Part shown: positions 1,580 through 4,276 of the stretch, piece after piece
Layout: each line of letters starts with the position of its first letter
How positions within the stretch are numbered: the stretch's first letter is position 1
Translations under genes and position numbers: made by a program
The notes under the pieces: model-generated
Seen by the model: the letters and a program-made list of their open reading frames with translations, nothing else
Database searches by the model: none
What the model was told of the DNA's origin: nothing
Assembly: GCA_054661495.1 (NCBI GenBank)
Contig: BAAFSQ010000508.1
Span: 1 to 5,038, forward strand
Direction of reading: 5' to 3'
Source of the DNA: Zygophlyctis sp. KS116
Taxonomy: Eukaryota > Fungi > Chytridiomycota
DNA length: 5,038 nt

Positions 1580-4174
1580 CTACCATCCTTGGTATTTTAT
1601 ATTTCTCTCTAGTGGCTTCAAGGGAGCCAAACTAATTATTCCCTTTTGTCCTTTAAGTTTTCTGTATTGAGCAAATTAGAATATACCTCTTCTTTGGGGC
1701 TGTAGGCTCTAAAGAGATGTCTTTACTCTTTTCTGAATTTAGATGATTTTCTTCATCTTTATCGATACTTGGTTCAAGTTTAGAGAGATTTTCGTGAATT
1801 TGTAGATCGAGATTGGTATCTTTTGGTTTTTCTTGATTTACTAGAGGATGTTTTTCTTTCATGTGACGGTTGAGGCGACTATGATCTATATATGTTTTAT
1901 CACAATATGAACACGGAATTCGTTCATTCTAGGATTAGTAAATATAATTTACCAAACTATCAGTCTTGGGCCTTGTCCGACAGGATGAATTTAGATCAGA
2001 AAAGGTAAAAGTTTGAGTGAAACAATCAATCGTGTATTTGAATGGTGTCTGAGTTCCTATACTGGGCATGGTATGGTCCTTTCTATTGGGCAAATTATCA
2101 AGGATCATATGGTTTAATAATTCTTCATTCTTTTCGTGTTTTAATGAATCAAGTGTTTTAGAAACTACTGAGGATGAGAGTGCATCAATCAAGTCTGATA
2201 TTCTTTTACGCATTTGTACGTGTTGAAGTTGAAGATTTTGGATCATGGAATCTGAAGCAATTCTTTGGTTTAGTAATTTTTCCTGTTTATGGGAAATAGA
2301 AGCTGCATTTTCAAAGTGGCCAAATAAAAGCACTTCTAAACGCTGTATAATTTTCAAATTCTGACTTGATTCTGGGACTAAGATGTAAATATTGTTACCT
2401 TTTTGGTATATATACTTTCTTTCTATAAGAGATTCCCGTAACAATTCATTTTCAGCTTCAAGTAGCTGAATTTTTGAGTTAAAGAAAGAAATAGTGTCGA
2501 GATAACCTTTTATTAATATTAATGGGCGCTTACCGTCATAAGGGTAAGCAGGATCCGTATTTATGCCCACGCTTGTTTCAGAGCGCAAATCAGTTTCATT
2601 TTCCATTTGAATATCATCGCTAGATGGATCATTTTGTTCATCCATGTTACAAACATCAAGTTTACCCAAATTTTGTACATCCATGTTACAAACACCAAGT
2701 TTAACCGAATCAGATTCTGAATTAGCCAACTCAATGGAAATTGACTGATTTAATTCAGAAAATTCGTCGATTTGATTCGCAAACATATTGATATTTGTCA
2801 ATGGATGCCATGTTTTCCTTCTATGCTTTCCTGGGTTACTTATTCCAGATGAATCTAAGATGAGTTTATTGAAGCTGATCAAGTTGTGTTCAATGCTTAT
2901 TTTGTTTCCTCTAAGGGGATCTTCAATTTTCGTTGTGTTTTCAGTAGTTTTCATCATATCTAATTGTTCTCTTAAAGCAGTGATTTCTTTTTTATAGCGC
3001 TTTAATAAGACATTGTCTGCCTCTATTTCATTTAACTTTGGCTTATTTTTTATAGTTTTAGCTCTAGTAGCAAATTTCAATGTAGATATTGTTTCTTCAG
3101 AGTATTGATTGGATGGAGTTATAGTACAAATAATCAAAGTTTTAGAATTTCCTCCTAAAGCAGGTTGTAGTATACGAGTCAACTTTGAATCTCTATAAGG
3201 AATGTGTTTTCTAGGATTTTAAATAATTTTTCTTTTCTTTACTCTTGTGCGCTTGATAATTTCCCAATAACAGTCCCTAGAGCCAATAAACTCTTATTAA
3301 TATTTCCAGCTTCCTTTAGCCTAACTCCTTCAGCTCCAGTGTACCCAACTCTTTCTGAACCTGCTAAATCCACTAAATTCTACAACTCTTATTCTTAATA
3401 TTTTTACCAATGTTGAAACACGAACTGATTCATCTGATTCATCCAACTTTACTTTACTTTCAATAATCTTTCTTTAATCTTTTCATATTTACTATTCTAA
3501 ATATCGAATGTGATCTACTACTCTTTTCATTTACATTTGTCTCTCCTACAGCTCTATTTTCTATAATTTAGAAGAAAAAAATTACTATTCCCTTGCAACA
3601 TCAATTCCAAAACCTGATCTTGACTATATACTACTATTTGAGATAAATTCCCAACATAAACATCTCTCTACCTATTATTACAAAATATTTACATTATGAT
3701 TTTCATGAATCTTTAGACCAGTATTTTCTGGCTGTAGTAAATCATTAATAACTTCATTATAGATTTCTAAATAGCAAACACGCAATAGATACTCCCGTTC
3801 AGGATTCTATAGAGTCATTTAAATCATTCAAATACATTTTGAATACATTTAAATATATCTGCAATTGCTTTTGGAATAATGCCAATACTAGATGAACTTC
3901 CAATCATTGTATGAGTTTTTCCGGATGAAGTTTGTCCATAAGCAATAATCGTAGCATTAAAACCATTCATTACACTTGATACTAAATCTCTTGAACTTGA
4001 TTCATAAATGTAATCATCGTTATCTACATCAAAAACTCTATCAAATGAAAACGAGACTTTTGTTTCCTTGTTATACAGTGTATTTTGTAATCTAGTCCAA
4101 GAACAAGAATGTCCTTGTAACAGTTCCCGAGAATTTAGCGGACGAAGACGAACAGAGACTTGAATATTGTCCAT
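1580..4174 (-). CDS. CENPE: Kinesin-7 (CENP-E-like) motor protein with a C-terminal C2H2 zinc finger; exons 4174-3836, 3806-3693, 3667-3586, 3560-3493, 3467-3408, 3379-3243, 3210-1953, 1928-1687, 1661-1580; ~793 aa
   Basis: Splicing restores a complete N-terminal motor (~4174-3051): [15 protein letters not shown]-loop [26 protein letters not shown], switch I NEKSSRSH, switch [46 protein letters not shown]. The GQTSSGKT P-loop, the neck NKPKLNE...LLKRYKKEI and a downstream RRxTW motif are kinesin-7 traits. The last two exons are less certain than the motor exons. Confidence 0.88.
1662..1686 (-). other. Spliceosomal intron, 25 nt (kinesin intron 8)
   Basis: AG/GTATATTCTAATTTGCTCAATACAG. Removal gives ...APKKR|[26 protein letters not shown] with TAG at 1582-1580. 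Confidence 0.7.
1848..1913 (-). other. C2H2 zinc finger coding segment within the kinesin tail
   Basis: [22 protein letters not shown] fits C-x2-C-x3-Y-x5-L-x2-H-x4-H. Confidence 0.85.
1929..1952 (-). other. Spliceosomal intron, 24 nt (kinesin intron 7)
   Basis: G/GTAAATTATATTTACTAATCCTAG, with a TACTAAT branch point and in-frame stops. It joins the long ORF in frame to the zinc-finger exon. Confidence 0.8.
2631..2706. repeat. Two-copy 39-bp-period tandem duplication in the kinesin stalk
   Basis: 2631-2667 versus 2670-2706 match at 34 of 37 positions. They encode [11 protein letters not shown] / [11 protein letters not shown]. Confidence 0.9.
3211..3242 (-). other. Spliceosomal intron, 32 nt (kinesin intron 6)
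   Basis: GTAAAGAAAAGAAAAATTATTTAAAATCCTAG. It joins KLSSAQE to [12 protein letters not shown]. Confidence 0.9.
3380..3407 (-). other. Spliceosomal intron, 28 nt (kinesin intron 5)
   Basis: GTAAAAATATTAAGAATAAGAGTTGTAG. It joins VRVSTL to [10 protein letters not shown]. Confidence 0.93.
3468..3492 (-). other. Spliceosomal intron, 25 nt (kinesin intron 4)
   Basis: GTAAATATGAAAAGATTAAAGAAAG. It joins [10 protein letters not shown] to IIESK. It has an AAG acceptor and is purine-rich. Confidence 0.88.
3561..3585 (-). other. Spliceosomal intron, 25 nt (kinesin intron 3)
   Basis: GTAATTTTTTTCTTCTAAATTATAG. Removal gives [21 protein letters not shown]. Confidence 0.93.
3668..3692 (-). other. Spliceosomal intron, 25 nt (kinesin intron 2)
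   Basis: GTAAATATTTTGTAATAATAGGTAG. It joins LKIHENHN to RDVYVGNLS. Confidence 0.9.
3807..3835 (-). other. Spliceosomal intron, 29 nt (kinesin intron 1)
   Basis: GTATTTGAATGATTTAAATGACTCTATAG. It joins DIFKCIQN to [18 protein letters not shown]. Confidence 0.93.
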
Positions 4175-4276
4175 GTCTAGAAGCGGTTTAATTAGTAATT
4201 ATAGAATTGATCCGCCGTTTTTGATTTTTCTTTCAGTCTAAAAACCGTCGGCCAGCGCCTGCGGTTGTGCTTCATA
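4175..4276. promoter_or_regulatory. 102-nt divergent promoter region between kinesin-7 and inhibitor-2
   Basis: ATGs at 4174 (-) and 4277 (+). The spacer is locally CpG-rich (GCGGTT twice, CCGCCGTT, AACCGTCGGCCAGCGCC) against an AT-rich background. Confidence 0.6.

Follow-up and report, generated by a model that had tools for sequence, protein, structure and literature searches.

The kinesin locus and its gene model

The stretch under study, here called the window, is the whole 5,038-bp contig BAAFSQ010000508.1 (C508) from the 12.7-Mb assembly (~33% GC) of the chytrid Zygophlyctis sp. KS116, and its minus strand from 4174 to 1580 very probably represents one gene of nine exons and eight introns (24-32 nt) that encodes a 793-aa, N-terminal-motor kinesin of the kinesin-7 (CENP-E/KIN-7) kind. 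Frame and phase bookkeeping, exon by exon, gave 793 codons without an internal stop, in keeping with the ~790 aa that an initial annotation of this DNA had estimated. The protein continues past the exon with the C2H2 zinc finger, as a second intron (1686-1662) and a ninth exon lie beyond it. The tail behind the motor begins with an acidic region of variable sequence, followed by a long helix and a disordered motif, both conserved; the finger comes next, and an acidic linker then leads to the basic motif PKKRKLKG and a conserved ...KYxGW end. Exons were used singly in the searches, and the orthologue P0005, which is one continuous open reading frame (ORF), stood in for the joined tail and finger.

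RNA data came from one freshwater metatranscriptome run in the form of assembled contigs. A contig of 151 nt covers 4045-4195 with 0 mismatches to the window, whereas the paralog described below differs there at 7 sites, and contigs of this run skip introns I1, I4 and I5. The 3' splice signal of this genome is loose: an RNA contig skips I4 even though the last three letters of this intron are AAG (purine at -3). For I6, the evidence comes from a 97%-identical strain on metagenome scaffold L002, which has a 4-nt deletion inside this segment that is tolerable only in an intron.

A probable micro-intron between the kinesin tail and the zinc finger

The exon that encodes most of the tail is separated from the finger exon by a 24-nt GT..AG segment on the minus strand (I7, 1952-1929), which contains TAA and TAG in the frame of the tail as well as the sequence TACTAAT (1940-1934). 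When this segment is removed, the end of the tail exon (...KTDSL, 1953) meets the start of the finger exon (1928) in frame. Both the intron and the in-frame join had been proposed in the initial annotation, and their coordinates were confirmed. The TACTAAT that had been taken as branch point is indeed present in I7, but it is not a conserved requirement and appears dispensable, because L002 carries TAATAAT at the same place. As a reference, we harvested 152 ORF-joining GT..AG segments from 200 kb of this genome; their lengths peak at 24-30 nt with a mode of 25, their 5' ends read GTA[AT], and they share an A-rich patch at -9..-7. I7 has the features of the micro-introns of this genome, including a length within 22-34 nt, and its position weight matrix score places it at the 89th percentile among the harvested introns and, among random GT..AG segments, at the 99.4th. 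That 1952-1929 is a spliceosomal intron is strongly supported by these sequence features together with the comparative data that follow.

Relatives of the gene were reached in two ways. The 69-aa ORF that a gene caller makes from an ATG inside the finger exon led to scaffold L002, and an exhaustive search with a 343-aa tail query among 1.84 billion representatives returned only four tail relatives. We compared the loci L002, L025/L030, L026, L027 and L028. Besides L002, these loci (L025/L030, L026, L027 and L028) have the downstream gene order of the window, and their tail exons are 26-39% identical to it. The finger lies downstream of the tail in every locus compared, so that its absence from close orthologues, which would have spoken against the fusion, was looked for and not found. 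I7 sits at the identical codon in five further loci from four other lineages, with 24 nt in L002, 25 nt in L025/L030 and in L028, and 26 nt in L026. The counterparts of 25 and 26 nt put tail and finger in different frames, and therefore only splicing can join them. In L027, only 12 in-frame nt of the intron are left, and its product P0005 is one ORF that runs from the tail through the finger to the PKKR motif. The retained 12 nt (L027 ~1418-1429) correspond to the first 12 nt of the intron of L025 (GTTAGTTTTCAG) and are translated in frame as VSFQ, and we read this as intron loss by internal deletion, a natural example of a micro-intron turned into coding sequence.

Codon comparison of the finger core (27 codons) between lineages gave proportions of synonymous differences (pS) of 0.44-0.90 and of non-synonymous differences (pN) of 0-0.15; between L025 and L027 there are 9 synonymous and 0 non-synonymous changes. 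These values indicate strong purifying selection on the finger codons, also on those that precede the only ATG. As had been stated before, no ATG lies between the stops in the intron and the finger, and the first one encodes a Met inside the finger helix. Most of the 27 codons lie ahead of this ATG and so can be translated only from an exon further upstream. The earlier view that the finger depends on splicing is thus supported by frame-shifting introns, an intron-less orthologue and selection ahead of the ATG. Motor, tail and finger are found on a single contig in three lineages (window/L002, L025 and L026), and in L025 and L026 the motor end and the tail lie within one exon. Taken together, this comparative evidence makes the kinesin-tail-finger fusion highly probable independently of RNA. 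The feature coordinates are listed in Table 1.

Table 1. Features of the proposed kinesin gene in the window
Feature	Position	Length	Strand	Phase	Content or basis
Exon 1	3836..4174		-		start codon at 4174; N-terminal motor part including P-loop
Exons 2-6 (motor) with introns I1-I5	3243..3835		-		frame/phase check without internal stops; per-exon Pfam Kinesin matches
Intron I1	3835-3807	29 nt	-		skipped in metatranscriptome contig
Intron I2	3692-3668	25 nt	-		frame/phase check
Intron I3	3585-3561	25 nt	-		frame/phase check
Intron I4	3492-3468	25 nt	-		skipped in metatranscriptome contig
Intron I5	3407-3380	28 nt	-		skipped in metatranscriptome contig
Intron I6	3242-3211	32 nt	-		removal joins exons in frame after ...SSAQ(E)
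Exon 7	1953..3210		-		motor end (alpha-6), neck, variable acidic region, conserved ~105-residue helix, conserved linear motif
Intron I7	1952-1929	24 nt	-	0	GT..AG; in-frame TAA and TAG; conserved position
Exon 8	1687..1928		-		single classical C2H2 finger, then acidic, poorly conserved linker ending APKK
Intron I8	1686-1662	25 nt	-	2	GT..AG; one Arg codon split alike in every relative
Exon 9	1580..1661	26 codons	-		completes PKK-R-KLKG; conserved C-terminus; stop TAG at 1582-1580

Several further observations concern the loci compared. Opposite window ~2424, L002 has 129 additional nt in frame (2535-2663), and the 43 aa that they encode repeat the beginning of the conserved tail helix, so that P0002 contains a 19-residue stretch twice; either the tandem duplication is genuine, or a repeat has collapsed in the assembly of the window. 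The contigs of L025, L026 and L027, the last with a longer stalk, all break inside or just past the kinesin motor, as would be expected if these genomes, too, had a second, paralogous motor of nearly the same sequence at which short-read assembly comes to a halt. A metagenome scan with a profile of the finger exon gave 105 pattern matches, none of which was confirmed, and word-index searches with the finger exon and with its profile returned nothing beyond ORF fragments from these few loci. In public data, the architecture is restricted to five lineages, all of them represented only by metagenome or sequencing-run contigs.

The genome uses the standard genetic code and contains at least 7 division-2 chitin synthase genes and about twenty kinesin loci. 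A ciliate-type code, under which the intron stops would be read through, was considered and rejected: introns are skipped in RNA, and exon 7 is devoid of TAA and TAG over 419 codons although the GC content of the genome is 33%. At its 3' end, the stop codon of the kinesin gene (1582-1580, minus strand) lies only 15 nt from the stop codon (1562-1564) of a convergent plus-strand gene, whose product is ATP-synt_E-like in the relatives, and the 3' untranslated regions of the two genes must therefore overlap.

The C2H2 finger

The finger comprises residues ~690-713 and follows the pattern C-x2-C-x12-H-x4-H, with the ligands C692 (1913-1911), C695 (1904-1902), H708 (1865-1863) and H713 (1850-1848). 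The exact C2H2 pattern with the core spacing C-x2-C-x3-Y-x5-L-x2-H-x4-H is invariant in 6 loci. In a six-frame scan of the genome, Pfam zf-C2H2 matched with 25.4 bits, just above the cut-off of 25.2. Two independent AlphaFold2 models predict two short strands and a helix (beta-beta-alpha) with a predicted local distance difference test (pLDDT) score of 85-92. Pattern, Pfam match and predicted fold thus agree with the classical C2H2 finger of the initial annotation. When a 200-kb sample of this genome was translated in six frames (~400,000 residues), the more permissive pattern C-x2-C-x12-H-x3-5-H had 0 occurrences, and the finger is more than a chance match. Across lineages, 20 of the first 27 residues of exon 8 are invariant, among them D, R and R at helix positions -1, 3 and 6. 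Among proteins of solved structure, the best sequence matches are fingers of ZFP57 (E 1e-4), HIC2 and CTCF.

The tail and a second probable micro-intron at the C-terminus

For the tail, structure prediction of the intron-less orthologue P0005 gave a ~105-residue helix with pLDDT >95, a disordered stretch with a conserved 13-residue motif, the finger and a disordered acidic linker. Searches of the ESM Atlas for look-alikes of the tail returned generic coiled-coil clusters with low recognition and were uninformative. In the variable part of the tail (window 2640-2720, minus strand) we observed a short internal repeat in which a ..VCNMD.. unit occurs twice, and blastn against L002 cross-matches both ~41-nt units.

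Intron I8, which had been overlooked, measures 24-26 nt and splits one and the same Arg codon in every relative. Some of its versions contain stops or have a length that cannot be divided by 3, and in these the conserved last exon is reached by splicing only. The peptide of exon 9 is present in all six loci, and the protein end ...KY[EQD]GW is conserved. Joining the exons across I8 yields PKK-R-KLKG, and from its likeness to a classical monopartite nuclear-import signal we infer that the motif is nuclear-import-like. We also compared the last exons of L025, L026, L027 and L028 for a T-P site beside the basic motif (window 1625-1611, minus strand): three of these relatives have T-P-x-K and the fourth T-P-x-Q, whereas the window and L002 have A-P-L-K. 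T-P-x-K is a site of the cyclin-dependent kinase consensus type. Nuclear import could, judging from these residues, be under cell-cycle control in the relatives, with this control lost in the window and L002.

A CENP-E-like motor from a partial duplication

The exons jointly cover positions 1-327 of the Pfam kinesin domain (PF00225), each well above the cut-off, including exon 1 with positions 1-116 (E 8.6e-27) and exon 7 with positions 275-327 (E 5.6e-21). The motor is complete, with P-loop, switch I and switch II (DLAGSE) motifs in exons 1, 4 and 6. It starts at residue 3 and is followed by a neck with a LLKRYKKEI-type motif, and a long helix is predicted in the tail of the orthologue. Among solved motors, CENP-E is the best match of exon 1 (90 bits vs 69 for kinesin-1), ranks second for exons 2 and 6, and reaches 229 bits when CENP-E (1t5c) is summed over four exons, vs 201 for the next solved motor. 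Among the 120 nearest relatives listed for exon 7, those with a name are almost all centromeric protein E, KIN-7L/N or NACK1/2, with one KIF3/17, and the others include unnamed kinesins of Hyaloraphidium, Gonapodya, Batrachochytrium, Neocallimastix, Caulochytrium and zoopagomycetes; the closest kinesins with an organism name come from zoosporic fungi. None of these 120 kinesin-7-like relatives carries a C2H2 Pfam domain. The CENP-E-like, kinesin-7 label given to this motor earlier is supported by its best matches.

Another contig of the same genome, C115 (locus L003), carries a kinesin gene of ~4.6 kb whose coiled-coil ORFs form a long series, and in which a C2H2 finger was not found. The two genes can be aligned over window 4255-2983 (minus strand) and C115 1246-2479: nucleotide identity is 94% for window 4255-3489, including 81 nt upstream of the ATG and two introns, and 81% for window 3379-2983, and beyond this point there is no similarity. 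Based on this pattern, the gene is therefore best described as a partial duplicate joined to an unrelated tail. The sequences strongly support that it arose as a partial duplicate of the long CENP-E-like gene or has been kept alike by conversion with it, and that motor and neck are common to both paralogs whereas the stalk was replaced by an unrelated, lineage-restricted tail. A second copy of the tail or the finger exon was not found in the genome itself. The identity between the paralogs is also a mosaic, with 0 differences over 3976-3668, including two introns, 21 differences in the 82 nt of exon 3, and an exon 5 that is 22 nt longer in the window; such a pattern suggests tracts of gene conversion between the two genes, not an even divergence.

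Weighing the alternatives

A number of results weigh against a spliced kinesin-7 whose finger acts in the nucleus. Membership of kinesin-7 is favoured but not proven, as the assignment is drawn from match scores and nearest relatives, and for the motor end and neck alone kinesin-2 scores above CENP-E, which is lower there where the CENP-E crystal construct is cut short. On the finger exon by itself, Pfam zf-C2H2 gives 23.2 bits (E 8.4e-5), below its 25.2 cut-off; Foldseek of the finger model against the PDB found no significant match, the domain being very small, and the nearest non-significant neighbours are a mixture of CHHC, UBZ and C2H2 fingers. A single C2H2 finger usually binds DNA weakly, and nuclear import is read from the basic motif. 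With respect to I7, a length of 24 nt lies at the lower end of the size class, with only 4 of the 152 harvested introns, and among the RNA contigs of the run none maps to 1594-3285, which leaves the 1953/1928 and 1687/1661 junctions unobserved. The last two points would fit a gene in which I7 is mostly retained; the TAA at 1937-1935 would then end a finger-less kinesin of ~690 aa, and the isoform with the finger would be minor or regulated. Retention would bring an immediate stop in 4 of 5 lineages and hence be a clean switch, but outside the motor nothing is better conserved than finger, basic motif and C-terminal peptide, the L027 lineage has hard-wired the fusion through intron loss, and I7 scores above most accepted introns of the genome; we therefore consider predominant retention improbable. 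Far less likely still is that the kinesin ends at its stop and that the finger ORF behind it is an independent small gene or a dead remnant. Prokaryote-style gene calls on the metagenome contigs do give it an ORF of its own of 52-98 aa, but its only ATG follows both cysteines and lies in the finger helix, the residues ahead of this ATG are near-invariant with almost no non-synonymous change, the distance to the tail ORF is just 24-26 nt with GT..AG ends in every lineage, and P0005 is one continuous ORF. Practically negligible, finally, is an assembly chimera in which a CENP-E-like 5' end was joined to unrelated DNA across the repeat shared with C115. It would account for the 94% identity of the first ~770 nt to the paralog and for the breaks in the contigs of three relatives inside or just after the motor; however, the independent scaffold L002 has the same order, in which an upstream IPP-2 gene is followed by motor, tail, finger and the downstream genes, L025 and L026 have motor end, tail and finger on one contig with motor end and tail in one exon, and the RNA contig fits the window rather than the paralog at the 5' end.

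With the spliced fusion as the preferred reading, the ligand of the finger may be of two kinds that are about equally likely. We put it somewhat short of an even chance that the ligand is nucleic acid or chromatin, the reading that we prefer, which would imply a chromokinesin-like role. It is a comparably serious possibility, likewise to be held tentatively, that the finger binds protein, ubiquitin or RNA, its fold being used as in UBZ, CHHC or U1-type fingers, and that it docks the motor to a partner at the kinetochore, at the spindle or in a ribonucleoprotein, and not to DNA. The finger is single and not part of an array, its nearest, though non-significant, structural neighbours include the UBZ of RAD18 and WRNIP1 and the CHHC of Gtsf1 and U11-48K, and its weak Pfam matches include zf-C2H2_jaz and zf-Di19. 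On the other hand, its best sequence matches, ZFP57, HIC2 and CTCF, are DNA-reading fingers, and its spacing and core are those of the classical DNA-binding type with the invariant D, R, R at -1, 3 and 6; neither point is decisive.

A possible mechanism and its relation to known kinesins

The protein is probably a dimer held together by its long helix and neck, and by comparison with other N-terminal-motor kinesins the dimer would be plus-end-directed. The basic motif would take it into the nucleus, where the two fingers per dimer would hold the tail on a nuclear ligand as the motors move along spindle microtubules. Carried further, a small clade of lake chytrid-like fungi may have built its own chromokinesin from a copied CENP-E motor and neck and a tail with a DNA-reading finger and a nuclear-import signal, a scenario that we regard as conceivable but unlikely.

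The motor occupies the same N-terminal place as in CENP-E and other kinesin-7 proteins (animal CENP-E; plant KIN-7, NACK1/2), and CENP-E is the best solved match overall. In contrast, CENP-E proper has a very long stalk and a C-terminal kinetochore-binding region, whereas the protein of the window has 793 aa and a ~340-aa tail with a C2H2 finger, which beyond position 2940 bears no relation to the long paralog; a long form of the CENP-E type exists separately in the same genome (C115), and its 5' end is common to both genes. The fungal kinesin-7s Kip2, Tea2 and KipA have short tails, an N-terminal extension before the motor and cytoplasmic cargo of the plus-end-tracking (+TIP) type, and to our knowledge they have no zinc finger. 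As fungal kinesin-7s with a short tail they would resemble the window gene, and they are set apart from it here by description. Among chromokinesins, kinesin-4 KIF4 has a Cys-rich domain, and kinesin-10 Kid/KIF22 and NOD bind DNA through a helix-hairpin-helix. The likeness to these proteins would lie in the proposed logic only, that is, a plus-end motor with a nuclear-import signal and a chromatin-capable tail, and is thus a functional analogy; KIF4, Kid/KIF22 and NOD belong to other motor families and have other tail modules, whereas the window encodes a kinesin-7-like motor with a single C2H2 finger. Classical fingers of the ZFP57/CTCF type share the spacing and the beta-beta-alpha fold predicted here, but the finger of the window is single, lacks an array and TGEKP linkers, and is attached to a motor protein.

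Zinc-binding tail domains on kinesins as such have precedents. 'ZF' is listed among kinesin accessory domains (PMC1434745), and a kinesin motor domain is mentioned in a survey of wheat RING E3 proteins (PMC8169666). Plant kinesins with zinc-finger or RING tails likewise carry a zinc-binding tail domain on a kinesin; as far as stated, however, these domains are RING or other types and not C2H2 beta-beta-alpha fingers, and they have no relation to the tail of the window. Full-text literature searches found no description of a kinesin combined with a C2H2 finger. What appears new here, in that we did not find it described, is a kinesin with a classical C2H2 finger in its tail, whereas kinesins with other zinc-finger or RING domains are already on record.

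The findings also carry a practical warning: with introns of 24-26 nt, standard gene callers split the protein into a 'kinesin' and a 69-aa orphan ORF, and the architecture is therefore invisible in the protein sets searched, where it is present only as separate ORFs. Kinesin tails decide the load of the motor, and new tail modules are a route to new motor functions. In the present case the origin is unusually clear, with a recent partial duplicate of the CENP-E type that keeps its motor, the 5' part of which still seems to undergo conversion with the parent gene, and gains a zinc-finger tail and a nuclear-import-like motif. If the proposed chromatin-binding role is true, a kinesin-7 would grip chromatin directly and independently of the helix-hairpin-helix and Cys-rich tails of kinesin-10 and kinesin-4. 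If the finger does bind DNA or chromatin, a chromokinesin would have been invented independently in early-diverging fungi, a group in which mitosis has received little study.

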